Origin: Malacoraja senta
Taxonomy: Eukaryota
Length of the DNA stretch: 64,000 nt
Assembly: GCA_038087875.1 (NCBI GenBank)
Contig: JAXLNO010005255.1
Location: forward strand, 1 to 64,000
Direction: 5' to 3'
Positions 4,791 to 64,000 of the stretch are shown here, piece after piece. The notes under the pieces were generated by a model that saw only the letters and a program-made list of their open reading frames with translations, was not told the origin of the DNA and searched no databases. How positions within the stretch are numbered: position 1 is the first letter of the stretch; each line of letters opens with the position of its first letter. The position numbers were made by a program, and so were the translations under genes.

Positions 4791-4794
4791 ACTA

Positions 4795-6310: not shown

Positions 6311-7022
6311 CCTTGGTAGAAACAAAGAACTGCAGATGCTGGTTTATACCAAAAATAGACACAAAGTACTGGAGTAACTCACTGGGACAGAATTCTTGCA
6401 GGTGTGTGACTATGAGAAGGCAACAGGTGTCTCAGAGCAACCTGTAAACTGAACACTAGTCATCCTGTTAAGGCAACATTCACTAAACCTTGCTCACCTG
6501 GCCTTGTCTTTCTCCTCTGGCAGCCAGCTGCTGCCTCTGCTCCTCAGCCAGAAGGCTCATGATAAATCTACAAAGGATGCCTCTTGCACTTTCCACCACC
6601 CACCCCCACCCACTGACTTTTCCCAATACACAGCTGACAGAGCAGTGGGCCTGCCCCTCATCTCTAATTCCAAAACAATTAGAAACATAGCAAATAGGTG
6701 CAGGAGTAGGCCATTCGGCCCTTCGAGCCGTTTAATATCACCATGGCTGCTCATTCAAAATCAGTACCCCGTTCCTGCTTTCTCTCCATATCCCTTGATT
6801 CCGTTGGCCCTAAGAGCTTGGCCGTTAGCCCTAAGAATCTGTGGGACACGGTAGGATTGTTAAACTAATCATTTCCAAGCAAGGCTCATTCATGAATGTA
6901 TGAACTGTAATTTAATTTGTAAACAACACCACTAACCTTGGACTGTGGTGTAGTTTACAAATATATGATCATCTTGTTGACATGCGTTGACTTTCTGATC
7001 AGATTGAGACTTTGGAGTCTCA

Positions 7023-39869: not shown

Positions 39870-41493
39870 TTGTGCCACCCCTAAATATGTTCACTATTCT
39901 ATTGCAGAATCTCCAATCTCTCCCTCAATGTCAGCAAGGTGAATTTGAAGGAGGTAGTTATCGACTGTAAAAATATGATTCAACTGATGGATAACTCCGC
40001 CCAGCAAGTGGACTGGATTGTAATGGAGAAAGAGGATTGCTCCTCTAGAAACATTGGAGCGATCCTCCTTTCTCCAATGAAATTGAATAACATAAATTAT
40101 AATAAGAACCCAATTATTCATAGTACAATCCGAATTTGGAAACAAATAAAACAAAATTTAAAATTAAGAAATTTATCACTTTTATTACCTATAGTTAATA
40201 ACCCTTCGTTTAATCCCTCTATTATAGATAAAGCTTTTACACATTGGGATAGACTAGGAATTAAAACGCTTGGTGACTTGTATGAAACTGGAAAATTACT
40301 TTCATTTCAACAATTACAAATAAAATATAAACTCGGAAATAATCAATATTTTAAATATTTTCAAATATGCGACTATTTGAAAAAATATACAAAAGATCAT
40401 TATAATAACCCAGTAGATGTATTGGACGAGGCAATGCAAATAAAAGCTGAATCAGCAAACTTAATATCATATTTGTATAATATTATCTTAAATGTACAAA
40501 TACCATCTACGGAGGGTATCAGAAGAGACTGGGAACAAGAGTTAGCTATTAAAATTTCAAAGGAAAGTTGGAATGAACACTTATTAAACGTGCATAAATG
40601 CTCGATTAATGTAAGACACACTTTAATACAATTTAAAATTTTACATAGATTATATTATTCGAAAACTAAAATTCATAAAATTTTCCCAAATGTTTCATCT
40701 ATTTGTGATAAATGTCAATCCCAAGAAGCTACTATAGCGCACTCATTCGTTTTCTGTACAAAAATTCAAAAATTTTGGAATTAAATTTTTGAAATCTTTA
40801 CAAAGTTATTTAAAACAAGACTGATACCCAAAGCAGAATGGATTATCTTCGGAATAACGGAAGGTGGTCCAGAACTAAATGTGTTTCAAAAGAAACTAAT
40901 GGACTATGTGTTAATAACTGGAAAAAAGCTAATTCTAAAATTTTGGAAGAAGGCTCCAATACCAACTATAAATATGTGGATTTCAAATATGTTTGAAACA
41001 TTACACCTAGAAGAGATAAGACTCCTCATAGCAGGTAAACCAGATCACTTCCACCTGACGTGGTCTGCATTTATAGAATTATTACAAATATAGGGTGCAA
41101 AAGTACTTAAAAAAAAAAAAAATTGAGGTCAGGTAAGGGGGGATGATAGTTGAAGAGTTGGTATGTCCCATTTACGTAATGCTCATAAAAATATTTGTTT
41201 CTCTCTTTTTCCTCTTTCTCTTTCTCTTTCTTTTCTAGGGTCTATTCCTTAACTCTTTTTCTTTTGTTTTTAATTTTGCTCTTATAGGGTCTTCGTCCTT
41301 TTTTGTTGTCACATTTTCTACACTTTCACTTTTTCCTTCACTTTCTTCTTTCTTTTAATCTTTTCTTTTTCTAGTGTAAAAAATAAATGGAGTACATTAA
41401 TTGTAAGAAGATATAAATGACGAGTACTAATGTATGTGGTTGTAATGTAATGTACTTCTAATAAATTAAAATAAAAAAAATAATAATAAAAAA
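39870..41493 (+). mobile_element. Second 5'-truncated L1/Tx1-clade LINE of a related family, disrupted
   Basis: ORFs 39939-40784 and 40881-41093 are homologous to the 28677 ORF. A-rich tail at about 41460-41493. Confidence 0.88.
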
Positions 41494-43953
41494 TTTTTTT
41501 TTTTTAATTTTAAAAAAGTTATCGACTGCTGGAAGGAAGATGGTGTACTAGCCATAAGCTTCTGGGATGCACCACAGTGACAGAAGCAAATGACCACGGA
41601 TCGAACAGGCGGCCGCCGAGAACATCCCGGCGGGCCAGTGAAATCAAGGACAGACCCGGCAGCCGCCGAGAACAAAGCTAGACTCGGCCGGTCGCCTGTA
41701 GCCATATGTGCCGGCAGGTTTGGTTCACCGGTGTCAAGAGCATCCCGGTGGAAGCTGCTGAGCTTGGCCCAGAAACCCGGAGAGTCGTGGAGGAGGGAGC
41801 CACTGCCGCCGCTGGGCGCAAGGAGTGGGCCGCTAAGAGAGGGACTGAGGTATTACCTCCAGGATAGGGGTTGCCTCCCGGGACACAGAGCCAGTTGGGC
41901 GACGAGAGGGACGTCAGTTGGCTGGCCGAGCTGGTCGAGGGTGACGGAGGAGGCCCCCCTGGCAATAGCCCGGGGTTTAACTGAGCTTACCTGGATCGGG
42001 GGCGCTCCAGTAAATCCAACATACGGACCGGACATTGGACTTTTTCTTTTGTAAATACTGCCAAATTATGGCGACGGGAGCAAGAATTTCACTGTGCAGT
42101 GCATAAGTGACAATAAAGAATCATTGACACATTGAAGTCAGAATCAATAATGCGGAAGTGCGAGTGCTGAAGTGGGAATGGTGAAGAACTTCAAATTCCT
42201 CGGCATGAACAACCTGTTGCATTTTAGTCACTGGCGCAGAACTTTGAAAATAATGGACGTTTAACAATCCATCTGCAGCACTAATTAGAAACAGAGAAAG
42301 CAGGTGCAGGAGTAGGCCATTAGGCCCTTCAAGCCAGCACCGTCATTCAATATGATCATGGCTGAGCATCCAGAATCAATAGCCTGTTCCTGCTTTCTCC
42401 CCATATCCCTTAATTCTGTAGCCCTAAGATCTAACTCTCTCTTGAATACATCGAGTGAATTGGCCTCCACTGCCTTCTGTGGCAGAGAATTCCACAGATT
42501 CACAACTATCTGGGTGAAAGCGTTTTTCTTCATCTCGTTCCTAAATGGCCTACCCTTTACTCGTAAACTGTGACCCCTGGTTCTGGATTCCCCAATATCG
42601 GGAACATTTTTCCTGCATCTAACTGTCTAATCCCTTAAGAATTTTATATGCATCTATAAGATCCCATCTCATCCTAAATTCCAGTGAATATAAGCCCAGT
42701 CAGTCCATTCTTTCCTCATATGTCAGTCCCACAATACCGGGAAAATAAATATTTTACTTTTTTATTGAACAATATCCTTGATTTTATTGCTTTAAAAAAA
42801 ACCATTCTGTTCCAGTCCCACCACAGAGATTTTTTGCTATATAATTCTTTGGCTCCTTTCTGCCTTCAATCAATTGAAAGCCAGAGTGGTAAAGACACTA
42901 TTCATAGCATTGAGTATAAGAGTCAGGAAGTTATATGCTGCTTTATGGAACTTCAAAGATAGACACAAAATGCTGGAGTAACTCAGCGGGACAGGCAGCA
43001 TCTCTGGGTAGAAGGAATGGGTGACGTTTCTGGTTGAGTCCCTTCAGGCTGAAGAGGAAAGGGAGACACGGAGATAAGGAAGTGTAAGGTATGAATGAAT
43101 AACATCAAAGGAGATGTAGTTCAAAGAAAATGTAGAATAGATCATTGTTAGCTAGGAGAAGGTGGAACGAGGCACGCAGAGATAATTTTTTATCGGGGAC
43201 AGTCAGACTGGTCGGAAAATAGAACTTCAGATAGGCTACTTTTAGAATATTATGGGCATTTCTGGTTGCCCCAATGCAGGATGAATTTGGAAGCATGGAA
43301 TTAGTGCAGAGGTGGTTTGACAGAATAAGGACAGGGAAATCATTACACGTGCATTGTCCAATTATTATTACTTAAGCAATAACAGTAAAGTGGAATAAAG
43401 ACAGACACAAAAATGTTAGATAGAGCTTTAGGGGCTGGTGCAATCAGGGGATATGGGGAGAAGGCATGTACGGCTTATTGATTGGGGACGATCAGCCATG
43501 TTCACAATGGATGGCAGTGCTGGCTCAAAGGGCCGAATGGCCTCCTCCTGCACCTATTTTCTATGATTCTAAAAAGCTGGAGTAACTCAGCAGGTCAGAC
43601 AGCACTTCTGGGAAAAAGGAAAAGGTGACGATTTGTGTCGAGACCCTTCCCGAAATGTCACCTACTCCTTTTCCCCAGAGATGCTGCCTGACCCGCTGAG
43701 TTACTCCAGCTTTTTGCATCTGCCTACAGTAAAACAAGCATCTGCAGTTCCTTCCTACACAGTAAAGTAGACTATCTGGTTTATCTAAAACTTTAGTTTG
43801 TGGAATTGACTGCATTCTGAATTGTGAAATAGTTATACTTTGAGAAACATCTATTCGGTTGTAAGATGCTATGTGAAATATGATTTTGTAATTGTTGTCC
43901 TTAAAACACCAATATAATCCCTACCATAAAACCTGATCCTTAAACTATATTCA

Positions 43954-44024
43954 CTGGCAATTAGTGACAAGTGGTCTCATTCCCATTGGATCTGGTTATC
44001 AGGTTTGTGTACACATGGACCAAT
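43954..44024 (+). promoter_or_regulatory. Candidate class I promoter: X1/X2-like + Y box (ATTGG) + CCAAT
   Basis: CTGGCAATTAG-TGACAAG at 43954-43971, TTCCCATTGG with ATTGG at 43985-43989, and CCAAT at 44020-44024, all 100-170 nt upstream of the leader ATG. X2-Y spacing is about 5 nt shorter than recalled for HLA-B. Confidence 0.35.
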
Positions 44025-44127
44025 AATTAGCTTCACACCAGAGTTCTGTTAAAAAAGTACAAGAGAATATGTTACTGTTGCTGCATTTACTCTGCTGGTT
44101 AAATAGTGCTGTAAGCAGCTGTTAAAC

Positions 44128-44179
44128 ATGCTTCTTTTTACCTTACTCAACACTTACGGTGTGGCCACTGTCTCGTCTG
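44128..44179 (+). CDS. MHC class I-like leader exon (MLLFTLLNTYGVATVSS)
   Basis: ATG, then 17 signal-peptide-like codons, then G|gtaagc. The phase-1 donor joins alpha1 as G+AT = Asp. Intron 1 would be 8.5 kb and contain the DIRS element. Confidence 0.75.
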
Positions 44180-47100
44180 GTAAGCAATGCTCTTTCTACT
44201 TGTGAACTTTGGGGAAACAACAAAACTGATTCTATTTACTGTTGCACAGTCCCTGTGTTTGCCCTGGGTTCATTGTCTTGGATGTATTAATTGAATGATT
44301 GAATTGAATGTATTAATAATTTTGGGTAACGGTCATTCCTGAGTTGTGAAGGTTCCTGTGAGGTTATATATACTATGGTTACCTTGGTAATCCATTGAAG
44401 AGAAGAACTGAATACATGTAAATAATGAACATAGAGCATAGTACAATACAGCATAGGAGCAGGACCTTCAGTCCTTCAGTCTGAAGAAGGGTCTCGACCC
44501 AAAACGTCACCCATTCCTTTTCTCCAGAGATGCTGCCTGACCCGCTGTTACCTCAGCATTTTGTGTCTACCTTCGGCCCACAATGTCTGTGCCGAACAAA
44601 ATAGTAAGATTAAACGAGAACTTACCAGTTTGAAGTTTGATCTGTATTTTATGAGGAGTTACGATGAGGGATTACGTGAAGACCCCGTTCAGCACGCATG
44701 CGCGACATTCTTCAAAGCAGCGGTGTGGAATCACAGGAAACACAATAATAGAAATAAACATAGTAAAGAAAAGGAGAACTAAGATACCTGTTGATCTATA
44801 TATTTGAGGGTGGGAGCAGAGGGCACGTAATCCCTCATCGTAACTCCTCATAAAATACAGATCAAACTTCAAACTGGTAAGTTCTCGTTTAATCTTACTA
44901 TTTTACTTCGGAGTCACGTGAGTGACTACGTGAAGACTTCAAAGCTCTGTGATTTCAAACCGTGTAACAGTTCATACTTCACTCGCTGCCGAAGTCATTC
45001 AAGGGAGGAAGTATGTTATCGTAATCAACCATAATCTGTTTGTAAACAATAATGGTATCTATTAAACAATAACAAAAGACAAAATGCTCCCCCGGGCTTA
45101 AATTATATATTTTTGCAGATTTTAAAACTCTTTCTGCAAATAACACAGGTTCTGCTAGCGGCTTGTGGTAGAACGTTTGGAACGTTTTCTCCATGTTCAT
45201 TCTTTTAGCCGCCGATGTGGATGCTGCCCTGGTGGAGTGAGATGTATATACATCAGTATCTACTCCAGCAGCTCCCAGTACCTGCTTGAGCCATCTCGAG
45301 ATGGTTTGGCTCGACACCCAACCATGAGGTTTCTTGTGGCTGACCCATAAGGCTTTTTTTTATTATTTATTTATTTATTTATTTATTATTATTATTATTT
45401 TTTTTCCCCTTCTCCCTCGAGAATCTCTTGTTGTGTTGATGTAAGTGAATAAGTGAGTCATGTCACACAACCGTAGGTCAGGTGGGTATGCCCGGAAATC
45501 CATAACTAGGACTCAAGTACCTGGCTTGCTCTGCTTTAGCAGCTCCTGAATGGTGAATGAGACCCGGTCTGGTGTTATAACCATGTTGTCCAGTCGCAGT
45601 AAGTGGAGGGACTGGACTCTTTGTGCTGAGACTAGTAGCATCAGCATGACCATTTTCAGGGTTAGCTTTTCCAGGGTGAGAGACCTGGCTGGGGACCATC
45701 CCCTTAGGTATGTCAGGATCACACTGACATCCCAGATTTGTGTATACCTAGGTCTAAGAGGGTTGGAGTTGACGATACTCCTCATGAGTTTGATCACCAG
45801 CGGGTGAGACCCTATGGCCTGTTGTCCTGGCACCTGTTTTAAGTAGGCTGACAGCGCACGTCTGGCAGTATTGATGGCGCTGTAGCTCAATCCTTCATTA
45901 TGGTGAAGGCCCCGCAGGAACTCCAGTACATTGGTTATGGTTGCAGATGAGTACGTTGTCCCAGTAGTCGAGCAGTATCTTTCCCACTTCCTGATGCTCG
46001 ATAGGTATTGTTTCCTGGTGGACATACGGTGTCATCATGTTGATGGTCCTGTCAGACAATCCCAGTCCCAGCAGTGGTCTTTTGATAATCTGCAACCCAG
46101 TAGGTTAATTTTGGCATGGCATGGATGCCTTATGCCTGATACAGGGTGCGTCAATAGGTCTGGGCTACTGGGAAAGGTCATAGGAGTTTCGATGACCATG
46201 TCGAGGACCACTGGGAATCATGGCTGTGTAGGCCAGTTTGTACTATCAAAATACCTGAAGCAGAGTCCATCTGTATTTTGCGTAGTACCCTACAGATTAA
46301 GGCAGAAGGGGAAAAAGCATAGAAGAAATCTGTCTCCCAGTTCAGCACGAATGCATCTATCGCTGCTGCCTCAGGGTGTGGTTCCCAAGGGACATACATT
46401 GGTACGTGGTGATTTAGTCTGGATGCAAAGAGATCGATATCTGGTGTGCCATATTGGTTTGTAATTTTAGCAAAGCTCTAGGATTTAACATCCATTCGGT
46501 GTTTATCATTGAATTTGCATGACCTGGCACTGTATTTAGCTTACCTGGTAGGTAAGTTGCTGATAGCCAAATATGTCTATCGACCCACCATTACCAGATT
46601 GTGTTGACCCAATTGTCACATGATATCGATTTTATTCCGGCCATATGGTTAATATAGGCCACCACCGTGATATTATCAATTTGTAAATGAACATGCAAGT
46701 TGTGCATATTCCTAGAATATGCTTTAAAACCATAAAATGCACCCAACATTCCCAAATAATTTATGCCCAGTGTTTGTAGTAAAGACGAGTCTAGGTTAGT
46801 CCATCTACCACCTGTGCTGGATATGGTATTAGTTGCTCCCCAGCCTTGAGCACTGGCATCTGTTTGTATAGTTAACGTTGGGTTATTGATGATGATAGGG
46901 CTGGAACTATGCCAAATGTGTTATATCCACCATTGTAACTCTGATATTGCTTCAATGGGTAGTTTCATGGATCTGTCAAAGTGACCTGCATGTCGTTTCA
47001 ACGCCTGTACTTTTGCCCTTTGTAGGTGCTGATAGTGCAGGAGTCCAAATTGTGTAGCTGAAAATGCTGCTACCATTTTGCCAATTACTCTTGCCACTTG

Positions 47101-50100
47101 TCGGATGGTTGGTCGATTGCTTACCATTAAATTGTTGCACATCTGTGCCAATTCTGCTGCTTTACCTTTTGGCAACGTTACAGACATGTGGATTGAGTTA
47201 ATTGAATCCCAGATAGTCCATAGTTGTGGATGGCGTCAACTTGGATTTATCTGGATGTATGACAAACCCAGGGTTTCAACAATTATTTGGTAGCTAATAC
47301 AGCTGATTTAGCCAACTCCATGGTTTTGCCAACTATTAGGATATCATCAAGATACGCCATGACAATATGTCTTTGTTTCGCTAATGTTGCCAAGGCTGGT
47401 TTTAATATCTTGGTAAATAGTCTAAGGCTGTAAATTTTCAGGTATCTGCGATGACCCTTGTGAATGGGTACTGAATAGTAGGCATCTTTTAATTCAATGC
47501 TTGCCATAAAGTATCCTTTGGAAATCAGTTGTTTAGTAGTTACAAATGTTTCCATTTTGAAATGTACATACTTAACAAAGGTATTTAGTGAGGTTAAGTC
47601 AATGATGATGCGACATCCACCATCTTTTTTACTTTTGGTAAATATATTTGAGACAAATTCCAAAGGATCATGTTTAGATTTCTCAATGACACCCTTTGTA
47701 AGTAACCTCACCAGTTCTGCTTGAGCCTCTAGTTCTCTTTGACTGAGAGGGTAAAGACCCTTTGGGTACGTGCTGAACTGGTGGCATGTTTTCGAAGGAA
47801 CTCTATTTTGTATCCCCGAATACTGTTAAGTATATAACTATCATTCGTGAGACACCTTCTGTTAGTACAGTTCCCCATTTACATGCTGGTAGGAACCAGA
47901 CCCACCTACCTCCATATTTATGGTAGTGTTCCTTTCTTCCGTTTGTTCATCCGTCGTTATACTGCTGGATGTACTGCTGATGTACTGCTGATTGGGGGTG
48001 GCGCATTTTCCATGGGGTCCGCTCTGGGCCCTGGCCTAAAAAGGCTTTCGGGGATAGTATGCGGACCCCGAGCTTTCACCAGTGACATAAATTTGACCTT
48101 GACTGGTGGACGCGGTGGGGTACTGCCGTCTGGTTTTTTGTGTGGGTCTGCTCGTTCCGGGGCCTGCCCTCATGAGGCCAAATGCTTTGGACTCCTCCTC
48201 CAGGTCTTTCACTTGTCCTTCCAATAACAGGATCTGCGGCTCTGAGGCCGGTGTTTTACACAGTCCTGCAAACCTGGGATTGAGGGCAGGTCTTATTCTC
48301 TCCTTGCGGAGGTTATTTATCTCATATTGGGTGTAGCACAGCAGAGCCAGAGTGTCTTGCTGGTTTGTGGTCATATCCACCCCATCCACGGAACGAGCAT
48401 AGGCTGTTATCCCTGTCGTCAGGAGCTTGAGGATTTTAGCTCCTGGTTCCGGATACTCTGTCCCCCCCCCCAGATTTGGCTGTTAACAGCCGGTACATTG
48501 AGCGAACTGCAGTTTTCCAGCTCTAGTGCCTCATTAAGTACCTGTCTTGTAGGGGTTTGAGGGACAGGTGGTTGATGCTGGCCGCCAGTTTTGGCTCCAA
48601 TGGCCGCCCTGCTCGTGGTGAAACCACGTAGCGAATCTCCACACCCAGCAGCTCTTCCTGATCCTGTACCCCAAGCGTACTCCCGACATCTTCAGCCAAT
48701 GACCCCTCTTCCTGACCAGCCCAGCCCTGGTCGCCAACGCTGCCCTGCTTTGAGGGGAAAGCGATGGCCAGTGCATTGTAGAGCACTGCTGTGGGAGTGC
48801 CTGATCCCCCTGGCGAGACTGCTCTAGCTCCTGAAGCAAGTCTCGCTGGAGCAGTTGCTCCATGAGCCTTTCCATTCGGCTCAGGCGGCTAGCTCTGCCG
48901 CTCTAAGGCGGACCCTCCTCATCGGAGTCAGACATAACCGGCCGGTTTGTTTGTTTGTTTTTTTTTTAAAACTTTTCCTCCAGCCCGCTGCCGCTCATCA
49001 GGCTGCGCTAGCGGGACTGGGCTCGGCTCGGTCTCGATGAGGGTGGACCGCCGCATATGCGGTCCAGGTGCCGCCTCTCGCCCCCCACTGATGGAAAACT
49101 CCCGTTCTGTTGGAGTCGGACGGGGGGCGGTTTTCTTCCTTTGCCGTGCTGCTCCTGTTCCCAGTTCCTCTGGAATAGAGAGCAGAGCAGAGCACAGCTT
49201 GCGGATTACGACCTCAGAGTAAGACTTACCTGAAGGTCCGCTGTTTATTTTCACCGACTTGTAGCGGGAGCGCCTGTACTCCCGGTCGTCGCTGTTGCAC
49301 TGCGTGAACGCTAATGTTGCGCATGCGTGCTGAACGGGGTCTTCACGTAGTCACTCACGTGACTCCGAAGTAAAATAAACTAATCTCCTCTACCTGTATG
49401 TGATCTGTATCTGGCCATTCCCTGCCTAACTATGTACCTATCCAAAAGCCTCTGAAATGTAACTGTTATATCTGCCACCATCACCACAACCACCACTGGC
49501 AGCGCGTTACAGATGTCCACCACCCTCCACATAAAACAACTTGCTCCGCTCATCTCCTTTGAACATTGCTTCTCCAACCTTAAAGTGATGTTCTCTGGTC
49601 TTCAACATTTCCACCCTGTGAAAAAGGTTCTGGCTGTCCACTCTGTCTGTGCCTCTCACCATGTTATGCACTTTCATCAGGTCTCCCTTCAACCTCCAGT
49701 ATACAAGAGAAAACAATCCATGTTTGTCCAATCTGTCCTTGCACTAATGCCTCAGACAGAATTCAGGTAAACCGGTGATGTGCACTTTCAATAAAGAAGT
49801 GACTTCTGCATTAGTAGGTGTCCCACCTCTCCAAGATTTCCTCAGCTGGTGTTAGGCACCCACATGATGGTAAAATTCAGCCTGCATTAAATGACCAATC
49901 AATGTTGTGTTAATGTTGTTGCCATCTTGTTGTTTGTTGCATGCTTCCTGTCCTGCAGACCCTATCCATTACCCCACCACCACTTCCCCAGAAGACAATA
50001 ATGAGATTTAAGACGCTTGAGGATAGGCACGTGGATATGCAGGGAATTGAGGGATATGAATCATGTACAAGCATGAAGAGTTTAGTTTAACTTGACATCA

Positions 50101-53100
50101 TGATCGGCACAGACATTGTGGCCGAACTCCAGCCCATTACACCCTTAATGAACAAAAATCTATCAATCTCAATCTGGAAATTTGCAAGTGGGCAAGATGT
50201 TCAACAGATTACAGAATCGAGAACCAGAGGACATAGGTTTAAATTGAGGGGGGAAAGATTTAATGGGAATCTGATGAGCAATTTCTTCCCACACAATGGT
50301 ACCTTTCTAACTATTCTGACATTCGTCAAGGCTTAGAGATTACAAACCTGTAATCGGATGCTCGTCCTGAAAGTTTAATCCCATTCCTATCAGATGGAAG
50401 TAAATATAATGGTGATGGCCGTGTTGAAATAATAACATATAAAACAAAACTCCTTGGCTGTGGAGTGTTTTGCGAAGCCACATGGATTTTATCCTTACTA
50501 TTCCACTCTTAGCCTTCTTATGTTTCTCCTGGTAACACTGAAACAGACACTTCTAACTCTGCCCTCGGGGCCCCTTCTCACTTCACTTAAACACATGAAC
50601 TTTGACACTGTCTGGTGTGCTGCATGTAATCTTTATCACAGAACAAATACTGCTTGTTCGTGTGGAAACAAGAAACTGCACATGCTGGTTAATACACATA
50701 AAATACTGGAGTAATTCAGCAGGTCAGGCAGTATGTCTGGAGAACATGGTTAGGTGATGTTTCAGTTGAGACAAGTGTAGGAAGGAATGCAGATGTGTAA
50801 GAAGGAACTGCAGAAGCTGATTTAAACCGAAGATAGACAATAAAGCTGGAGTAACTCAGCGGTACAGGCAGCATCCCTAGAGAGAAGGAATGGGTGACGT
50901 TTCGGGTCGAGACCCTTCTTCTGACTGCTGATGCAGATGCTGGTTTACACCGAAGATAGATACAAAAGGCTGGAGTAACTCAGCAAGTCAGGCAGCATCG
51001 CTGGAGAAAAGGAATAGGTGGAGTTTCAGGTCAAGACACTGCATCAGACAGAGTCGGGGGTGCATATATTTCATTGTACTTTTTCATATCTCTCGGTTCT
51101 CTGTCCCCTGACTCTCATTCTGAAGAAGGGTCTCGACACGAAACGTCACCTTTTCCTTTTCTCTGTAGATGCTGCCTGACCCACTGAGTTACTCCAGTAT
51201 TTAGGCCCTGTTTATTACAGTCTCCACCCTCCACCTCCACCCTCCCCCCCATGGTTATTTCCTATGGTTATTCCAGTTTCCCCGCACGTCCCAAAAATGG
51301 CGGGCTGAAAGGTAAGTTGGCCAGTGTGAATTGATCATGCATATGTATTAGAATTGGTGGAGGGGATGAGGGAGGTGTTAATGGGAGATTGGCAAATATT
51401 AAATGGGTTAGCGTACTACAAGTACAAATAGGTGTTTGATGGTTACCACGAACTTGGTGGGCTAAAGGGCCTTTTAATGTGCTGTACCCAGAGGACATAA
51501 GTTTAAGATGAGGGGGGAATGATTTAATAGGAACCTGAGGCGTAGCTGTGTTACACAAAAGGTGGTGGGTGTACTGAATGAACTGCCGGAGAAGGTACTT
51601 CAGGCACGTACTGTCACGACATTTAAGAAACATTTAATCAGGTACATGGATAGGATAGGCTTATAAGGATATGGGCCTCAGTCAGCTGTAGAGCCCATGT
51701 CAATCGATATTTCTCAGGTGGAGATTAACAGATTCTTGATCAATACAGGTTTCAAGGGTTATGGGGTGCAGGCAGGAGAATGTGGTTGATAGGGAGAGAT
51801 AGATCAGCCATGATTGAATGGCCGATGGGCTGACTGGCCTAATTATTCTCCTAGACCTTATTTACTGATGAAATACAGGCAGTGTAGATGGGGCATGTTG
51901 GTTGGTGTGGCAAGTTGAGCCATAGGCCCTGATTCCCTGCTGTATGACTCTTTGACTTTACCTCTCTATGATTCTATAAAGTCTCCTTGACATTGTCCAG
52001 TTTCTTAATATAATAAAATATTCTTCAAATTTTGGAATATTGTAACTAGTAGAACCTATCGACATGATAGACAATAATAGATCTTTGAAGATGGGAAACA
52101 ATCCAATACGATCATTCAATACCTCGACCATAATTGGTGGAGTAGGTATCAGAGCCCATCATGCCAACTCTTGACGAAGGCTCAGTGGTGCAGCAGTAGA
52201 CTTGCTCCCTTATCTCGATTACAGCACCATAGACCCAGGTTGGATCCTGATTACGGATGCTGTCTGTACGGAGTTTGTCCATTCTCCCCATTACCGTGTG
52301 GGTTTTTTCCCGAGATGTTCGGATTCTTCCCACATTCCAAAGACGTACAGGTTTGTAGGTTAATTGGCTTGGTGTAGAATGTAAATTGTCCCTAGTGTGT
52401 GTAGGATAGTGTTATTGTGTGGGGGTTGCTGGTCAGTGTGGACTCAGTGGCCCGAAGGGCCTGTTTCCATGCTGTATCTCTAAGCTAAAAACTAAACTAA
52501 AGGCTCCTGACCCAAATTGTCACCTGATCATTGATGCTGCCTGCCCCACTGAGTTCATCCAGCACTTCCATCTGCAGGTCCTTGTGACTCCCTTATTCAA
52601 AGTTATTGTATTGTTATCAGTTTTAGCATTAATAACTTAGTTATTTTCAGTGAATGATACAATCATACTTATTTTTGTTTATGCATTGCAGATTTACACC
52701 ATCTTGCATTTTACTACCTGTTGAACCATGGATTGAATGAGCTGCCTGAGTACAGTATGGTAGCAATGCTGGATGACCTCCAGATAGCATATTTTGACAG
52801 CACACTAGAGCGGGCTGTTCCCAGACAGCGATGGATGGCCCAGTCTTTCCCGCAGGATCAATGGGATTCAATGGCCATCACAGTTGCAGGTTTTCATGGG
52901 ATTGTCAGAGGAAATGCTGAGATAGTCTACCAACAGCAACATGGTATCTCGAGTAAGTGTCGTGACCGGACCTGGGGTAGACACCCAGTGATGGCACAAA
53001 TGGATTTTGTTTTAGTTTTGTTGCTGTCACATGATTCTCTGATACACTTTTTTTGCATGTTAGTCAATCACATCAAAGAAAACTATTCATAAATACAATC

Positions 53101-56100
53101 AAACCAAACTCGTACAATAGGTAGAGCAAAGAGTGCAGAATGTAGTTCTCAGCATTGTAATGTACCAGTGCCAGAGAGACAAAGTCCAGTGTCTACAATG
53201 GGGTTGAGGTGAACCCTAGCATAAGGGAGGACTGTTCAGAAACCTGATAACATAGGGGAGGAAACAGTTACTGAGTCTGGTGGTGCACGCTTTAATGCTT
53301 ACGTACCTTCTGCAGGAAGAAGAAGGAATGACCAGAGCGGGATGAATCTTTGATTATGTTGTCTGCTTTCCTGAGCCAGTTGAAATACAGATGGATTCAC
53401 TGGTGGGGAATCATGTTTGTGTGATCGATTGTGCTACATCTCCACCTCCCTGCCATTTCCAGCGGTATTGGGCAGAACTCTTTCCAAACTAAGTTGTGAT
53501 GCAACCTGTCAGTGTGCTTTCTATGGCACATTTGTAGAAGTTTGTAACAGTCATTGGAGATGCCGCATTTCCTTAGTCTCCTGAGGCAGTAGGGGAACCA
53601 GAAACTCTCAACCTTTTTCACTTCAGCACCATTGATGCTGTTTCAGACATTTACTCCATCACATTTTGATAGAGACACGGCCCATCGTCTATATTTAATG
53701 TGTCCTAACTGCTGAACACCCATTGACAACAGTTGGCTGGTGATAGTCTCTTTATGGGTTAAGCATTTGATATTTAACACCAGTAAAAAGTGGATGGATT
53801 GGATCATCTGTTTTATTGGGCTGGAATGAGGGAGAAACCATAGTTTATTTATAGCCTGATCACCTAGAGATGGGACCTTGATTAAGCTGGTTGATGGTGA
53901 CTATGATGTATTCCCTCAACAATAATATTCTGTTAATCCAGCATTCCCTCAATATTGGCAACAATCCACAGAGAGTGTAGCAATCCCACACAGTGCAACA
54001 GCCTGATGTACTTCCCATCTGCATTGCCTTAACCTTCAGACTGACCTGTTCACTGTATAACATTGCCCATCTGACAATGCACTCCTTCCTCTGTTCTTTA
54101 TGTACGAAAGTGCAGAATCTGAGTTCTACCCTTCTGACACAGCAAAACTTCTTTAGTGTTACATCCGCAACAGTAAAGCTTCCCCCCTCAACACTTGAGG
54201 TTAGTCCATGCCCTCAGTATATAGACCATGGGTCATTGAGTCACACATCATGGAAACCGGCCCTTCTGCTCACTGAATCCACATTGATCATCATTTGTAC
54301 TAAGATGGAGTCACAGCAAACTGCAGATGCTGCCAATCTGAATTAAAAACAAACAGGAGGAACTCAACGAGTCAGGCAGCATGCTGTGGAAAAATGGACA
54401 GAAAACATATGAGACCAGGACCATTTAGAGTGATGGAGTAGGGTGGAGAAAGCTGGAAAATAAAAGTAGTCTGTGTAGGATACTGTTAATGTGCGGGGAT
54501 CACTGGTCAGTGCGGACTAGGTGGGCCGAAGGGCCTCTTTCCGCGCTGTATCTCTGAGCTAAACCTGCTCCTATGCTGTACAGCTCCATGTTGTGTTCTG
54601 TTATGCCTGTTTGTACCATGCTGAGAACTGATTTGTAAATTGCCTCTCCCTTCCATCCACTCTCCCCAACACAAATCCTCCACCCCTACCTCAGCCCCAG
54701 CTGTTTGCTTTGTGCAGGGTTTCTGCGGCTGTGAAGTGGACAGTGACAATTCCACTGATGGGTTTGTCAGACTGGGTTATGATGGGGAGGATGCCTGTGC
54801 TTTTGACAAGGACAGAATGCGCTGGATTGCACTACGTCCAGATTTCCAGATGCTAGCAGATCGGTGGAACGTCAACACCTTCATGAACAAGTATTTTAAA
54901 GATCTCCTGGAGAAGGACTGTGTGAAGTGGCTGCGGATATATCTGGAGTGTGGACAAGAAGCACTACAGAGGAGAGGTACACGACGTAGGCACTCTGACT
55001 GATGGGCCAGAGGATATCCTCTGGATAGATCAGGTGGGAAATATCATGCACTTCAGGCTGTCACTTGAGTAATTATTTAGTTTAGTTTAGTGATACAGCG
55101 CGGAAACCCACCGAGACCGCACCGACCAGCCATGCCCGCACACTAACACTATCCTACACACACTAGGGACAATTTGCATTTATACCAATCCAATTAACCT
55201 ACAAATTTGTACGTCTTTCGAGTGTGAGGGGAAACCGAAGATCTCGGATAAAACCCATGCAGGTCACAGGGAGAACGTACAAACTCTGTAAAGACAAGCA
55301 CCCGTAGGTAGTAACAAACCCAGGTCTCTGGCGCTGTAAGGCAGTAGCTCGACCGCTTCGCCACCCTGTTCTACGATGTGGGTATCAGTAAATTGTCTGG
55401 CAACGTGCCTCTTAGATGGAGCCAGTGGGTAGGAAGTGCAAGTGAAAGATAAATATTGTACCAGTGTCCTCTATCCACAGTCATATAGATATTCAGGAAA
55501 TGGAGGGATATGTATCTTGGTCTTATGTTTAGCATTGACCTTGTGCCTGAAGTGTCTGTTGCTGCGCTGATCAGAAACCCAATCAGATTCTCTATTTGCC
55601 TCTATTACTCCTTGGGATGGTGACATCCAATTTCCAACAGTTCTCTGGTTGAAGAACTTCTTCCTCCCATTCCCTCTTGGAATATTTAGTGTTATTATTC
55701 AGCTGAGATTCATGAACAAGTAGAAGCAATCATGTCTACAGTATCAATCCCAATGGTGAGTTATACTCCTCCATTGGGCCTGCATTCCCCTTACATCTGC
55801 GCTGTCAGTTCAAGTCTGGAGCTAAGATAAGGAGCATGTCAGTGATATTAAAACTAAATGTTTTGTTGTTTTGCCAGAAATGCAAAATGAAAAGAGAAAA
55901 GGCTGTAAACTTTGTGCAAGATAGAACTGCAGATGCTGGTTTACACTGAAGATAGAAGATGTTGGAGTAACTCAGTGGGTCAGATAGCATCTCTGGCCTT
56001 CTCTCCAGAGATGCTGCCTGACCTGCTGAGTTATTCCAGCATTTTGGGTCTAGGCTGGAAACTTTGTTCAGCTGGAGAAAAAACTGATTGGGAAAGAGGT

Positions 56101-59100
56101 GAGTTGCAGTGATCTTACAATTGAAGGCTTTTGTTCATGTCTTCACTGATTCTGACGCTTCCTACACTTGCAGAAACCCCTGAGGTGTTTATTGGGATTA
56201 AACGTGATGGGTCACAATCACTGAGACTCTCCTGCCTTGTCACAGGCTTCTACCCACGGGCCATCGATGTAACGTGGCTGAGAGATGGTGAGGGAGACCA
56301 CGAGTCTGAATCCAGTGATCTGTTGCCCAATTGGGATGGGACTTACCAGCTGAAGAATACAATTCAACTGAGTAGAGAAGATGTGGCAAAATTCTCCTGT
56401 TACATTGAACATGCAACTCTGCTGCAGGGAGTCAATGTTCCACAGGGTAAGTGGCAAGTCAATGAGGCTGATCACTTGAGAGAATAAACCTCCTGGACTG
56501 AGATAACAGCCTCAACACACTCTTAACTAAGCTGTGCATTTAGATTTTAGACTTTAGAGATATGGTGCAGATACAGGCCCCTCAGCTCAATGAGTCCTCG
56601 CTGAACAGTGATCATCCCGTACATTTACACTAACCAACACACTGGGGACAATTTACAATTTTACCTAAGCCAAGTAACCTTCAAGCCTGTATGCCTTTGG
56701 AGTGTGGGAGGAAACCGGAGCACCCGGAGAAAACCCACGCAGTCACAGGGAGAACATACAATGTCCTTGCAGACAGCACCTGTAGTCAGGATCAAACCCA
56801 GGTCTCTGGTGCAGTAAGGCAGCAGCTCTACCGCTACGCCACTGTGCCACCCATTATTAATTTGTGGTTATCTAATTGCCCAGAATTATTGATAGTCAAT
56901 GGAATGTGGTTTAATTTAAGAGATACAGCACAGAAACCGGCCCTTTGGCCCACGAGTCTGCGTCAACCAGCGATCCCTGCACACTTACATTATCTTACTT
57001 ATTAGAGACAATTTACAATTATACCAAGCCAATTAACCTACAAACCTGTATGTCTTTGGACTGAGGGAGGAAACCGGAGATCCAGGCAAAACCCACGCAG
57101 GTCCGGGGGAGAAGGTACAAAACTCTGTACAGATGGGACCCGTAGTTAGAATTGAACCGGGTCTCTGGCGCTGTAAGGCAGCAGTTCCACTAAGTGGGCA
57201 AAGCAGAGCCAAATGGAATACAGTGTAGCAAGTGTCTGGTTTTACATTTTGGCAGTCGGAATAAAGACATAGACTATTTACTAAATGGGGAGAGAATTCA
57301 GAAATCTGAGCTACAAAGTGGGAGTAGTAGTGCAGGATTCCCAAATAGTTCATTTGCAGATTGAGTCAGTGGTAAGTAAGGCAAATGCAATGCCAGCATT
57401 CATTTCGGGGGGACTAGAATATAAAAACAATGATATAATGCTGAGGATTTATCGGGCACTGGTGAAGACACATTTGGAATATTGTGAGCAGTTTTGGGCT
57501 CCATATTAGAAAGGATGTGCTGGCTTTGGAGAGGGTCCAGAGGAAGTATGTCCTGGGGATGATTGATTTAACGTATGAGGAACGTTTGAAGTCTCTGGGC
57601 TTCTACTCGTGGGAATTTAGAAGGATGAGGGGAAAATCTCTGAAACCTACCAGTTAATGAAAGTCCCAGTTAGTGGATGTGGATAGGATGTTTTCAGTAA
57701 TGGGAGAGTCTAGCACAGCCTCACAATGAAAATACGTACTTTCAAAATGGAGATGAGGAGGAATTTCTTTAGTCACAGGGTGGTGAATCTGTGGAATTCA
57801 TTGATACAGACAGCTGTGTGGGTCAAGTCATTGCATATTTTAAAGCAGAGAATGATAGGTTCTTGATTAGTACGGGTGCCAAAAGTTACAGGGAGAAGGC
57901 TGGAGAATGGGATTCAGAGGTAAAAATAGATCTGCCATGACTGAATGGTGGAGTAGACTCAATGGACTGAAAGGCCAACTTCTGCTCCAATGGTAAAAAT
58001 TATTCTTATGTCACCCTTAACTCACACATCCAAATGTAGGAAGCAAGATAGGCTGATCCTGGCCAAGGTCTCTTATCTTATTTCTTGGGCATCTAGCTAA
58101 TTTTTTAATAGTAGTTAGTTGCACAAAAGGCCAATAGTGGTGCCACATCCAACCCCATTATCAGGCTGAAGTAGCAGCACCTGTTCTGTAGCTGACTTAT
58201 TTGTTCCAGTCAAGACCTCTGCAAATATCTTCACACCAGGGCCAAGCTGACATGGTTAAAATTGCTGGTCAGTACAAATAGACAGTAGTGTTAATGTCTG
58301 AGTGTGCGTGTGTGTGTGTGTGTGTGCGCTCATGCGTGTGAGACAGAGAGAGGGGGAGGGGGAGGGAGAGAAAGAGAGTGTGTGTGTGTGAGAATATCAA
58401 ACTCTCAGATATTGAAATATCAGCAAAGTTTAAAACCTTTGAAGTTTTATCAACTATAAATGGGTTCACTTTTATTTGCTAAAATAACAATGGTCAACAT
58501 AAGAAAATAGCCTTGTTGACCTCTACACTGCAAATTGACCACCAGGGGGCGCTGACCTGTGTGCGGCTACCCAGCCAGCAGCTGTCTGTCCTTTCACCTT
58601 TATTTTTTATTTTAGTCAGTAAAGTGTTTTGTTTTGGAGGTCTAGACTTTTTTGTGTGTGGGGGGGGGGGAGGGGGAAACTACCTTTCAGGGTCCCTACC
58701 TGGCTGGAGAGGCAGCTTTTCTCCGGGCTGCAGCTTCGACCCGTCCTCGCGGCCTACCAGTGGGCCTGGAGCGGCGTTTCCTGTCGGGGACCGCCCAGAG
58801 CCTCGGCTTCGGCACAGCGCTGGAGCGCTATCGCGGAGCGGGCGGTGCCTTGCCCGGGTCGCCGCGCTGGAGCTCCGGTGAGCTGAGGATCGCTGGAGAA
58901 AACATCGCGGAGCTGCGGGACTGTGGAGCGACCAGCTGAACTTTACACCGGGAGCCTGGGATCTCTAGATGAGAGCGCCAGTTGTGGAGCTCCAACCGGC
59001 GCGGCCTTGTTGGCTTCGGAAGCCGCGGCCCCCAGTGCGGAAGCGGCCGTTCCAGGGTTCCGAGGCCGCTGGGAGGACTCTCCCGACGCTGGAGCAACAT

Positions 59101-59857
59101 CACCCGGCGAGAACGGCCTGGAACATCGGGCCTCCGTAGAGGCAACTGTGGAGGCCTCAATGGGCCCGACTATGGGTGAACTGGGGTTGGGGACTGGACT
59201 TTGTGCCTTCCCTCATGGTGGGACCCATTGTGGGGGGGTGTTCAGTGTTAAGACTATCTTGGTGTTGTGTCTGTATTCTCTCTCTTTTTTGTGTGCTGCA
59301 TAATGGCAAAAAGCATTTCACTTCACTACACCCGGGTGTATGTGAATGTGACAAATAAAATATCTTGAATCTTGAATCTTTATTTATGACATATGTTTGA
59401 TTCTTTAAATTCATAATTAAATGCTGCAGATAAAATCTCAACGCTAATATGAACTTCAAAGATTTTTCATTGATCTATTTAAACATCCATCGTCTGGACA
59501 ATTACATAAATCTAAGACTTTGTTACTTTTTATTTAGATGTGAACAATGCTAGTTTAATGTAGATAATAAAATCATTTCAAAGTCATAATTGATCAATAA
59601 ATGTTTAAAATGAACTATATATGCCAACAGAGATGGCAGCGAAAGAAGATATAAAGATTAGGATCGTGACTGGAGCTGTAATCGTTCCTCTCTTTCTCCT
59701 GGGGATCATCCTTGGAATTGGTTGCTGGAAGAAGAGGAAAAAGATAAAACCTTTCAATGAACAGGGACCAGCTGACAACAGCAGAGACCAGGAGACGACT
59801 GCAGTGACCATGAAGCACAATCAACTTCCATTGGGATGCAGAGGTCTACCGGAATGA
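44128..59857 (+). CDS. Non-classical MHC class I-like heavy chain gene (leader, alpha1, alpha2, alpha3, TM/cytoplasmic)
   Basis: Five exons joined by phase-1 introns, as is standard for class I genes. The alpha1/alpha2 motifs (FDS...P...W, QxxxGCE, YDGED, CVKWLRIYLE) and the IgC1 alpha3 (LSCLVTGFYPRAIDVTW, DGTYQL, FSCYIEH) are present. The lineage cannot be assigned without an alignment. Confidence 0.95.
44598..49377 (-). mobile_element. DIRS1-type tyrosine-recombinase retrotransposon, structurally full-length, ORFs decayed
   Basis: Left ITR about 49270-49377. Right ITR about 44598-44710, with inverted match 44676-44704 to 49319-49348. The ICR at about 44826-44938 is complementary to both outer ends. 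Fragments of gag, RT (MAYLDDILI), RNase H, methyltransferase-like (DAFVLNW...YAFSP) and YR (HSTRAAS). No TSD. Confidence 0.95.
52175..52500 (+). mobile_element. HE1-type V-SINE (tRNA-derived head, CR1-type tail), near full length
   Basis: tRNA-like head (ggtgcagcagtaga...ggttggatcctga), core tgctgtctgtacggagtttgt...ggtttgtaggttaattggc, and tail gggcctgtttcc...ctaaactaa. Confidence 0.85.
52692..52952 (+). CDS. MHC class I-like alpha1 exon (DLHHLAFYYLLNHGLNELPEYSMVAMLDDLQIAYFDS...YQQQHGIS)
   Basis: Acceptor ttgcag|AT and donor A|gtaagt. 261 nt, open reading frame. Confidence 0.93.
53050..53650 (-). mobile_element. Rex1/L2-like LINE 3' fragment in MHC intron 2
   Basis: LRRLRKCGIS and a degenerate ESILT.CIT.W region. 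Confidence 0.6.
54701..54976 (+). CDS. MHC class I-like alpha2 exon (VCFVQGFCGCEVDSDNST...LEKDCVKWLRIYLECGQEALQRR)
   Basis: Acceptor ccccag|CT and donor G|gtacac. 276 nt. Canonical C101/C164 equivalents are present. Confidence 0.95.
56174..56446 (+). CDS. MHC class I-like alpha3 (IgC1) exon
   Basis: Acceptor cttgcag|AA and donor G|gtaagt. 273 nt. Both IgC1 cysteines, FYP, W and DGTYQ are present. Confidence 0.96.
57260..57995 (+). mobile_element. Degenerate CR1 3' fragment in MHC intron 4
   Basis: YRALVKTHLEYCEQFWAPY motif and CR1 tail. Confidence 0.8.
58300..58390. repeat. (TG)n/(GA)n microsatellite cluster
   Basis: Directly visible. Confidence 0.9.
58530..59370 (+). repeat. Unclassified GC-rich interspersed repeat (related element at ~41494-42130)
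   Basis: T-rich start, GC-rich body and LINE-like ...tgacaa(a)taaa tail. No coding potential. Confidence 0.45.
58536..58554 (+). promoter_or_regulatory. CTCF motif
   Basis: TGACCACCAGGGGGCGCTG preceded by CTGCA (upstream-motif-like). Confidence 0.6.
59631..59857 (+). CDS. MHC class I-like TM + cytoplasmic exon (single exon)
   Basis: Acceptor ccaacag|AG (phase 1, weak pyrimidine tract). Hydrophobic IVTGAVIVPLFLLGIILGIGCW, then stop-transfer KKRKK, tail and TGA. Confidence 0.8.
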
Positions 59858-62883: not shown

Positions 62884-63339
62884 TGAACAATGTTCTGTTG
62901 AATTGCTTGTTTTTCAATATGTTAATTGTTTCCACTAAATAAACAGTTTAAATTTAATATAGTATTGTGGAAAAAAGTGTCTGTTAATCGCGGCGTAGAT
63001 CTCATATGGAAACAACCTGAAATGATGGAATGCATCTCACATACAAAATCATTGATTTATTAGAGAAATAAAACACAAACAGGCATAGAATAGCATTGAA
63101 TTACAAAAAAATTTCATTATAAGCCATGAAAATAATACAATGGCATTTAAGCCCTTTCAAGATCAGGCAACTTTAAAATAGGTGATGTAGGTGGTACTAT
63201 TAACACAGATTCAATAATTTCGCAATGTAAAACCATCCATCAACATACATAGATCGCACTTTTGTAAGATCTGGGGCCTTCATGATCGGGTACCTCTGCC
63301 GTGAAAACACAACCCTGACATCCCCTGTTTGCTTTTGAT

Positions 63340-64000
63340 CCTCAAAACACATTGTCCTGGTGCGGATCAGGTTATGGAGGACACATGCCGCGTAGACAAT
63401 GGCCTGCACATTCTCGGGCTCCTGCTCCATTGTTGTAAGCAGGCATCTGAATCTGCTAGCAAGGATACCAAAAGCATTCTCCACTACCCTCCTAGCCCTG
63501 GACAGCCTGTAATTGAAGATCCTTTGCTCCCTTGACACCCCTCCTGTGAGGGTATGGCTTCATCATCCATGGCCTGAGTGCAAAGGCATCATCACCAACC
63601 AGTGCGTAGGGGATGTCAGGGATGTCAGGGTTGTCTTCTCCAGGCAGAGGTTCTGGATCCGGAAGGCCTGCTCTCCCTTCTTCCAATGCTTGCCCAAGGG
63701 AGGTCTCTCTCCAGATCCCTCCATCTGCGGCACTGCCAGGTGTGCCCACATTCACAAACATGAAGTTGTAGTTTGCATCTACCACAGCTAACAGCACGAT
63801 GGAATGGAACTTCTTGTAATTAAAGTACACAGAACCTCCCCCGGGTGGACACCGGATGGCCACATGCTTCCCGTCAACAGCCCCACATGTGTGCAGGAAG
63901 TTCCATCTGCTTTGAAAGCCGTGCGCCACACTCCTCCACCCGTCTGGTGTAGTTGGGCAGTCAATAAGCTCATCATATGTTTTGTTGATGGCATCACACG
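63340..64000 (-). pseudogene. Harbinger (HARBI1-like DDE) transposase, frameshifted and C-terminally truncated
   Basis: [62 protein letters not shown] and ACVLHN are present. +1 frameshift near 63541. Confidence 0.92.

Follow-up and report, generated by a model that had tools for sequence, protein, structure and literature searches.

The skate Malacoraja senta has a non-classical MHC class I gene with an intact reading frame. The groove of its product has lost most of the residues that clamp the ends of a peptide and is lined with hydrophobic side chains, and its lineage is sister to the UGA genes of sharks. On account of the anchor loss, the greasy groove and the kinship with UGA, we regard a lipid-like or other non-peptide hydrophobic ligand as the best reading of what the molecule would bind and, judging by kinship and side-chain chemistry, we lean modestly toward it. 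The kind of molecule is already known, and the gene adds to an old lineage of sharks and rays that stands beside UGA.

Gene structure

The gene lies at positions 44128 to 59857 on the forward strand of the window (the whole 64-kb stretch of DNA analyzed), and its five exons form an intact open reading frame of 362 amino acids (Table 1). The two groove-forming exons have phase-1 junctions and GT-AG splice sites. Pfam recognized MHC_I in alpha2 (2e-16) and alpha1 (1.5e-5) and a C1-set domain in the fourth exon (1e-14), and the architecture is that of a class I heavy chain, with an alpha1-alpha2 platform, a C1-set alpha3 domain, a transmembrane anchor and both the C101-C164 and the alpha3 cysteine pairs. 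A tblastn search of the 64-kb window returned these exons only, with no further class I gene, and no framework gene was found there either.

Table 1. Features of the M. senta class I gene (positions in the window)
Feature	Position	Strand	Content and basis
Putative core promoter	43909..44024	+	5' of the ATG, a motif scan gave three Y-box-type matches (CCAAT/ATTGG), at 43909, 43985 and 44020
Exon 1	44128..44179	+	Start codon and 17-residue signal peptide MLLFTLLNTYGVATVSS; phase-1 donor GT at 44180
Exon 2	52692..52952	+	alpha1 domain; F7, Q59, Q84; hydrophobic helix SMAITVAGFHGIVRGN
Exon 3	54701..54976	+	alpha2 domain; Q96, G97, C99, C101-C164 pair, A123, L143, R146, W147, L159, Y171
Exon 4	56174..56446	+	alpha3 Ig C1-set with two cysteines (LSCLVTGFYP ... 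FSCYIEH); Pfam, splice sites, orthologue alignment
Exon 5	59631..59857	+	Connecting peptide, transmembrane helix IVTGAVIVPLFLLGIILGIGCW, basic stop-transfer, 40-residue cytoplasmic tail, stop TGA at 59855-59857

Exon 1 agrees with the annotated N termini of the Pristiophorus and Heptranchias orthologues, and exon 2 is 94% identical to that of Leucoraja (XP_055486430.1). The stretch just 5' of the ATG (44029-44127) is ~90% identical to the Leucoraja locus; the promoter motifs lie outside the part of that locus that we fetched. An alternative in-phase acceptor of exon 3 at 54695 would add Pro-Ala, and this longer form is the one found in annotated ray orthologues. The splice junctions, including the choice between 54695 and 54701, are taken solely from the orthologue models. 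An 8.5-kb part of intron 1 is rich in inserts and includes a DIRS-like element.

A conserved lineage beside UGA

The initial annotation had treated the gene as a singular oddity, a view that did not survive comparison with other elasmobranchs. Twelve species each have a protein that is 54 to 72% identical to it, the following matches falling to ~33 to 36%. This orthogroup is found in sharks and rays, mostly with one gene per species, and includes XP_055486430 (Leucoraja, 90% identical to the M. senta protein), XP_051899694 (Pristis) and XP_038671277 (S. canicula), among others; the leader and the exon structure are common to the orthologues. NCBI names them “MHC class I-related gene protein-like” (“MR1-like”), an automatic name that is misleading.

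In our tree, SH-aLRT is 100 for the clade formed by the orthogroup, whose internal branching broadly follows the species tree, and also 100 for the clade of UGA-like sequences; the two are joined with an SH-aLRT of 97. We identified the UGA-like clade through PDB entry 9CH4 (titled UGA, released 2026-03-18), which matches P0008 at 1e-138, and UFA through PDB entry 8GM8 (titled UFA, released 2024-11-27), which matches P0017 at 4e-90. Membership in UGA was rejected, as the clades are separate and genes of both are present in Leucoraja and in Pristiophorus; membership in UFA was likewise rejected, as P0017 is a distant long branch. The orthogroup is thus the sister group of shark UGA, and it is neither UGA nor UFA.

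The genomic setting may be that of a gene linked to other class I genes. In the little skate, Leucoraja, a UGA-like gene occupies 3,053-57,869 of a 127-kb contig and the orthologue, at 99,976-112,152, lies in tandem with it on the same strand, and in seven species the orthologue and many other class I genes are on contigs of equal length, which we took to be one chromosome-scale contig in each case. Elasmobranch UDA (Almeida et al. 2020, J Immunol 204:892) is described as single-copy and MHC-linked, within the class Ib cluster (PMC10751288), a description that agrees with the copy number and the apparent linkage of the present orthogroup; the supplement of PMC10751288 labels its genes “MHC-Ib” without lineage names.

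A 2025 review presents UFA and UGA as CD1-like molecules and reports that they bind CD1d-type lipids, as crystal structures and mass spectrometry indicate (personal communication cited in PMC12562908), and UFA has been called “very similar to CD1” (unpublished data cited in PMC10751288). With UGA, the M. senta gene has in common the helix motifs I-T-x-A-G-F-H-G-x-x-K/R-G and M-N-x-Y-F-K-x-L-L-E-x-D-C and, with the UGA-like sequences, 11 derived groove residues (Y22, T66, F70, G97, L116, A123, M152, Y155, F156, L159 and D163), at an alpha1-alpha2 identity of 37 to 41%. Y7, Y59, K146 and the N86 sequon are all retained in the UGA-like sequences, where position 99 is F, whereas the M. senta lineage has F7, H/Q59, R146, no N86 site, an invariant C99 and a more hydrophobic groove. 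UFA, too, is a low-copy, MHC-linked class Ib gene of elasmobranchs whose groove is hydrophobic, CD1-like by description (PMC10751288, PMC12562908), but it is much more divergent, with 30% identity to the structural model described below and a Z score of 16.4.

Loss of the peptide anchors

Residues were called from a MAFFT alignment with P0087 and P0169, two classical-type sequences from sharks, both of which carry Y7, Y59, R84, T143, K146, W147, Y159 and Y171; the HLA numbering is what we take to be that of HLA-A2, transferred via conserved landmarks. M. senta has F7, Q59, Q84, L143, R146, W147, L159 and Y171 at these positions, such that six of the eight peptide-terminus residues of the classical class Ia set are lost and W147 and Y171 alone are retained. 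The initial annotation had numbered the groove by eye, and a proper alignment could have restored the anchors; it did not. All seven substitutions the annotation had listed (Y7F, Y59Q, R84Q, Y123A, T143L, K146R and Y159L) and its two retentions are thus correct. The small floor residues G97, C99 and A123 are likewise there, as is C124, and so are Q96 and Y-D-G (Y118, D119 and G120), the residues that would contact beta2m. The N86 glycan sequon is absent, position 86 being His (Q-Q-Q-H-G), and the sole N-X-S/T of the protein is N-S-T in an alpha2 loop.

Across the ten orthologue rows tabulated, F7, Q84, L143, R146, L159, G97, C99 and A123 are invariant. Glycines 69, 72 and 76 of the alpha1 helix are invariant as well. 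Q59 is particular to the M. senta genome and H59 is found in all orthologues; contigs from three runs of related skates (X1, X2 and X7), which proved to be DNA of relatives because they span introns, have C at 52861, giving His. The small floor is partly a feature of rays, since most of the tabulated sharks have F or Y at C124 and V at A34. Between the two skate species Leucoraja and M. senta, one of 40 groove positions differs.

A hydrophobic and conserved groove

The groove is more hydrophobic than chance would give. It has 29 hydrophobic residues at 40 positions (two are charged), compared with 20 to 22 in UGA-like and 17 to 19 in classical-type sequences, and its mean Kyte-Doolittle value is +1.47, compared with 0.39 to 0.85 and 0.03 to 0.45, respectively. 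Groove columns are also conserved above the rest of the alignment (0.82 versus 0.73), a value of 0.82 being reached by 75 of 2,000 random column sets. As a proxy for pocket size, we summed the groove side-chain volumes and obtained 6136 cubic angstroms, compared with 6127 to 6349 cubic angstroms in classical class I. This is not clearly lower and thus gives no pointer to deep pockets of the CD1 type.

The CD1 comparison bears on the claim, made before this analysis, that the molecule does not present peptides and is CD1/EPCR/ZAG-like in function. The loss of six of eight anchors, the conserved greasy groove and the UGA kinship speak for a non-peptide ligand; pockets of CD1 size find no sign in the volume. 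CD1 itself (human CD1d, chicken CD1-1) may be alike in associating with beta2m and in having a hydrophobic groove without peptide clamps, but its structural-alignment identity to our model is 17 to 19% and its Z scores (17.2 to 19.4) are below those of UGA, HFE and MR1, which argues against membership. The M. senta gene is probably not a member of CD1. In addition, the YXXphi motif of CD1b, CD1c and CD1d was sought in the 40-residue tail, which has no tyrosine at all, and no tyrosine is conserved there in the orthologues.

What the groove may hold

The model used for these comparisons was an AF2 prediction of the alpha1-alpha2 platform of the Leucoraja orthologue (P0001:1-180), which is 95% identical to that of M. 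senta; its pLDDT was 72.6, with alpha1 helix blocks at 57 to 70. The platform fold matched many class I chains at a Z score of ~20. The nearest was UGA (9CH4; Z 21.3, root mean square deviation of 2.2 over 177 residues, 37% identity), although HFE (1A6Z) was tied with it at a Z score of 21.1. The structure prediction that the initial annotation had proposed as a check, run here on the orthologue, therefore points to UGA without separating it from HFE.

The groove keeps the class I scaffold, with the C101-C164 disulfide, W147 and Y171 in place and Q96 and Y-D-G on the side of beta2m. The clamps that hydrogen bond the ends of a peptide are replaced by F, H/Q, Q, L, R and L, and both helices and the floor are lined with aliphatic and aromatic side chains. 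In the reading that we favor, the heavy chain would pair with beta2m, and a hydrophobic non-peptide ligand, either a lipid tail or a lipopeptide-type molecule, would be taken up in the groove, whose size is that of an ordinary class I molecule. A conserved receptor of T-cell or NK type would then meet the ligand on the cell surface. Loading would probably take place in the secretory pathway, because the tail lacks a tyrosine-based endosomal sorting motif.

Among living animals with an MHC, cartilaginous fish are the oldest group, and if they have three separate, long-conserved class I lineages with a greasy groove that lacks the anchors, rather than the two represented by UFA and UGA, then non-peptide display would have diversified near the origin of adaptive immunity. 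Of the three groups compared (its own, UGA-like and classical-type), the M. senta lineage has the most hydrophobic groove, and this groove has hardly changed between sharks and rays. These traits recommend the lineage for ligand elution and for a search for a matching invariant receptor.

A molecule of this sequence might instead hold nothing, acting through its outer surface as a regulator or receptor ligand with a closed groove in the manner of HFE, FcRn and MIC. We think this unlikely, but several of the results above suit it: the HFE match on the model, a total side-chain volume that is not reduced, the invariant glycines 69, 72 and 76, which could permit tight packing of the alpha1 helix, and the groove residues themselves, as a buried interface between helix and floor is also predicted to be hydrophobic and conserved. 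Against it, sequence and tree both put UGA closest, and UGA is reported to bind ligand; moreover, small residues at 97, 99 and 123 beneath large aromatic helix residues suit a cavity better than a filled core.

It is improbable, in our judgment, that the groove presents unusual peptides or lipopeptides, either hydrophobic peptides or short ones with an N-acyl group, without terminal clamps, as chicken YF1*7.1 and the lipopeptide-binding class I molecules of rhesus do. The groove has the length and volume of a class I groove, alpha2 is equal in length to that of shark classical-type sequences, W147 and Y171 are kept, and YF1*7.1 structures with N-acyl glycine were among the tied matches to the model (Z 19.8 to 19.9), but the missing anchors include both C-terminal (K146, T143) and N-terminal (Y7, Y59, Y159) ones, and the glycan site of classical class I is gone.

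The gene could also be a silent or decaying copy that is unexpressed in M. senta despite its intact frame, to which we assign a very low probability. RNA depth on the three exons surveyed was zero, interspersed repeats alone being covered, but this was one run from a related species and an unspecified tissue, of which ~6% was read. Leucoraja has a dead duplicate of the gene with a stop at the C164 codon, and such duplicates in skates make the function of any single copy less certain; the insertions in intron 1 would also fit decay. On the other side, no damage is seen in any of the five exons, at the splice sites or at the start, the leader is identical to that of Leucoraja at 51 of 52 nucleotides with one synonymous change, and dN/dS relative to Leucoraja is below 1 (0.51 overall and 0.24 in alpha2, from small counts).

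Presentation of small metabolites in the manner of MR1, as the NCBI name would suggest, is highly improbable: MR1 is the best solved sequence match of alpha2 (5.9e-17, with aligned ranges of equal length), but alpha1 is much nearer to UGA (6e-22) than to MR1 (5e-5), the Schiff-base Lys43 is replaced by Ala, and what we take to be the cradle positions of MR1 (Y7, Y62, W69 and W156) hold F, S, G and F in M. senta. The K43 call, which agrees with the absence of Lys noted in the initial annotation, comes from a HMMER alignment of the orthologue P0157 to MR1, in which K43 aligns to the residue preceding V-P-R (E-R-A-V-P-R in M. senta). Orthology to MR1 was rejected on the missing K43 and on the tree, which places the gene among shark and ray lineages, and no MR1 is known from animals other than mammals (PMC12562908, Table 2).

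Finally, the hydrophobic ligand that we favor might be captured covalently or in a redox-dependent way through Cys99, making the molecule a third independent kind of presenter in cartilaginous fish, a proposal to which we give very little credence. Cys99 would then play the role of MR1 Lys43 for electrophilic or thiol-reactive lipids. It is unpaired, lies at the center of the groove floor pointing up and is invariant in every orthologue examined; position 99 is Y in classical, F in UGA-like and C in M. senta lineage sequences.

Structure and copy number of the gene

The 362-residue product of the five-exon gene is read in a frame without a stop codon, with GT-AG at every junction and with phase-1 junctions at the alpha1 and alpha2 exons, as is typical of class I genes. 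We regard the leader exon as real because its peptide agrees with the annotated N-termini of the sawshark and sevengill shark orthologues and because the little skate (Leucoraja erinacea) exon is identical at 51 of 52 positions, the single change being synonymous and the donor conserved. For the alpha2 exon, in-phase acceptors exist at both 54695 and 54701, six bases from each other; the short form corresponds to the shark models and the long form, which adds Pro-Ala, to the annotated ray models. Three CCAAT/ATTGG boxes lie at 43909-44024, less than 220 bp upstream of the start codon, and the 530 bp scanned contained no ISRE or NF-kB consensus.

Features of the class I gene and of the mobile elements around it
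Feature	Position	Strand	Evidence
Leader exon	44128-44179	+	N-termini of sawshark and sevengill shark orthologues; little skate exon
Alpha1 exon, MHC class I	52692-52952	+	Translation; Pfam MHC_I 1.5e-5
Alpha2 exon, MHC class I	54701-54976	+	Translation; Pfam MHC_I 2e-16
Ig C1-set domain, third exon found by Pfam	56174-56446	+	Pfam 1e-14
Connecting peptide, transmembrane helix and tail, one exon	59631-59857	+	
LINE-type reverse-transcriptase fragment	4005-4910	-	
LINE-type reverse-transcriptase fragment	10687-12172	-	
LINE-type reverse-transcriptase fragment	39885-40781	+	
RVT_1 (reverse transcriptase)	within 45000-47830	-	Pfam 2.4e-5
Tyrosine-recombinase N-terminal SAM-like domain	within 45000-47830	-	Pfam 1.1e-5
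ORF with DDE_Tnp_4, Harbinger/PIF-type transposase	63203-63998, runs off the right end	-	3.3e-17

A tblastn search of the 64-kb window with six different class I proteins found no second class I gene. In the little skate there is a second copy, XP_055486496.1, at 11731-12003 of contig JAMYXN010000412.1, where it is mis-annotated as a 263-aa protein. Since a stop codon replaces its Cys164 and no alpha1 exon was found within 10 kb upstream, we concluded that it is a dead duplicate. The description “single copy” holds for most species, not strictly for skates. The window copy is intact; no RNA reads fell on its exons in the ~6% examined of one run from a related species, and we keep a silent gene as an alternative.

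The groove has lost the clamps for peptide termini and is strongly hydrophobic

We aligned alpha1-alpha2 of ten orthologues with those of four UGA-like proteins and of P0087 and P0169, both classical-type proteins from sharks, using MAFFT, and tabulated 47 positions via conserved landmarks. The groove positions carry HLA-A2 numbers; the alignments themselves are tool results. All eight peptide-terminus residues are present in P0087 and P0169. The initial annotation had proposed that the window protein lost most of them while retaining W147 and Y171, and had stated that anchors restored by a proper alignment would count against its reading. The alignment did not restore them: the protein has F7, Q59, Q84, L143, R146, and L159 and keeps W147 and Y171, and every residue had been called correctly. 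The small floor residues (G97, C99, and A123, to which C124 can be added) and the beta2-microglobulin-facing Q96 and Y-D-G were likewise found as described. The class I scaffold is intact, and the clamps for peptide termini are lost from the two ends of the groove. We keep the binding of peptides or lipopeptides as an alternative.

Not all of these residues are equally widespread. Q59 is private to the M. senta genome, as all orthologues have His59, and DNA contigs from three runs of related skates carry C at 52861, giving His59. The small size of the floor belongs partly to the rays; most tabulated sharks carry F/Y124 and V34. Classical class I has an N86 glycan site that the window protein lacks; a lineage-wide N-S-T in an alpha2 loop takes its place. 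In a HMMER alignment of an orthologue with MR1, Lys43 of MR1 aligns to the residue preceding V-P-R, which in the window protein is Ala, so the lysine is missing, as had been claimed; MR1-type ligands are retained as a further alternative.

Among the three groups compared (window lineage, UGA-like, and classical-type), the window lineage has the most hydrophobic groove. When A, V, I, L, M, F, W, and C were counted as hydrophobic at 40 groove-lining positions, the window groove had 29 hydrophobic and 2 charged residues, against 20-22 hydrophobic in the UGA-like proteins and 17-19 hydrophobic and 5-6 charged in the classical-type proteins, and its mean Kyte-Doolittle value was +1.47, versus 0.39-0.85 and 0.03-0.45, respectively. 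The hydrophobic alpha1 helix noted at the outset is borne out by groove-facing M63, T66, V67, F70, I73, and V74; the groove-facing side of the alpha2 helix is hydrophobic as well (L143, M152, Y155, F156, L159, and L160), as is the floor.

At the center of that floor, two residues ahead of the disulfide Cys101, lies Cys99 (codon 54724-54726), which is invariant in all orthologues examined, sharks and rays alike, and is replaced by Phe in UGA-like and Tyr in classical-type proteins. With no conserved partner cysteine close by, the thiol of Cys99 in the groove is probably free. The extra cysteines C93, C124, and C175, unlike Cys99, are not conserved across the lineage.

The groove is almost invariant across the shark-ray split. 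Conservation among orthologues was 0.82 for groove columns versus 0.73 for the remaining platform, and 75 of 2,000 random column sets attained the groove value. The carpet shark (orectolobiform) orthologues P0157, P0158, and P0233 have Leu where others retain Trp147 and Cys at the position aligned with MR1 Lys43 (Ala45 in the window protein), showing that the groove of the lineage is not entirely frozen. Between the window gene and that of the little skate, dN/dS was 0.51 overall and 0.24 in alpha2, which, with only 49 substitutions, tells no more than that positive selection is absent.

The gene belongs to a sister lineage of UGA

A search of 1.8 billion representatives with the alpha1 exon gave one close match, the little skate protein P0001 (XP_055486430.1; 95% identity, 1.7e-47), followed by a steep drop. 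A search with P0001 gave a single protein from each of 12 species of sharks and rays, 54-72% identical and in every case named “MHC class I-related gene protein-like”; identity fell to ~33-36% in all remaining matches. In a maximum-likelihood tree built from 53 class I proteins, the orthologues formed their own clade (SH-aLRT 100), with internal branching that broadly follows the species tree, and their sister was the clade of P0006, P0008, P0011, and P0237 (support 97). Outside both fell a 19-member multi-copy shark clade, the classical-type group, the elephant-shark genes, and P0017.

Two structures allow the neighbors to be named. PDB 9CH4, “shark nonclassical MHC class I, UGA” (released 2026-03-18), matched P0008 without gaps (1e-138), and PDB 8GM8, “shark nonclassical MHC class I, UFA” (released 2024-11-27), matched P0017 (4e-90). 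Both proteins lie outside the orthologue clade, so we rejected UGA and UFA as identities of the window gene, which the tree places instead as UGA's sister lineage. The single-copy class Ib genes listed in PMC12562908 are UDA, UFA, and UGA, and by elimination the window lineage may be UDA. Eleven derived groove residues are common to the window lineage and the UGA-like proteins, which argues that the groove was remodeled before the two lineages split.

On a 127-kb little skate contig, the orthologue (99,976-112,152) shares its strand with a UGA-like gene (3,053-57,869) ~42 kb away, an arrangement that fits an old tandem duplication. As only 4 kb of the window lies downstream of the gene, any UGA neighbor would lie past the right edge of the window. 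The orthologue's contig in seven species has the same length as that of many other class I genes, and we take them to be one chromosome-scale contig.

A hydrophobic ligand is a reasonable interpretation

The initial annotation had proposed a non-peptide, hydrophobic ligand and a CD1/EPCR/ZAG-like function. The residue calls stand, and the kinship with UGA lends partial support: for UFA and UGA, binding of CD1d-type lipids, seen by crystallography and mass spectrometry, is reported as a personal communication cited in the review PMC12562908 and as unpublished data in PMC10751288. We infer that the groove of the window protein probably holds a hydrophobic non-peptide ligand, which is a reasonable interpretation. 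The gene itself adds to a kind of molecule that sharks were already known to have.

CD1-sized pockets are not indicated, since the summed groove side-chain volume (6136 cubic angstroms) is inside the classical range of 6127-6349; a closed groove is kept as an alternative here. The protein is closer by analogy to UGA, ZAG, or chicken YF1*7.1 than to CD1. An AlphaFold model of the little skate orthologue's platform (pLDDT 72.6) was nearest to 9CH4 (Z 21.3, rmsd 2.2, 177 residues), with HFE at Z 21.1 and TL, MR1, and classical molecules also within ~1.5 Z of 9CH4, so the fold search is no guide to function. The tail contains no tyrosine, which leaves it without a YXXphi endosomal motif, so the presumed hydrophobic ligand would probably be loaded in the secretory pathway.

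Mobile elements around the gene

The LINE-type fragments (Pfam RVT_1 6e-36 and 1.9e-10; zf-RVT 8e-5) and SINE-like repeats make this a repeat-rich neighborhood, in which no MHC framework gene was recognized within the window. ORFs on the plus strand at 60.9-62.3 kb had no Pfam match. Much of the 8.5-kb first intron is made up of a stretch at 45000-47830 with long antisense ORFs and weak Pfam matches, which has the layout of a DIRS-type retroelement. The SINE-like repeats at 54474-54614, 55038-55460, and 55884-56165 drew nearly all of the mapped reads.
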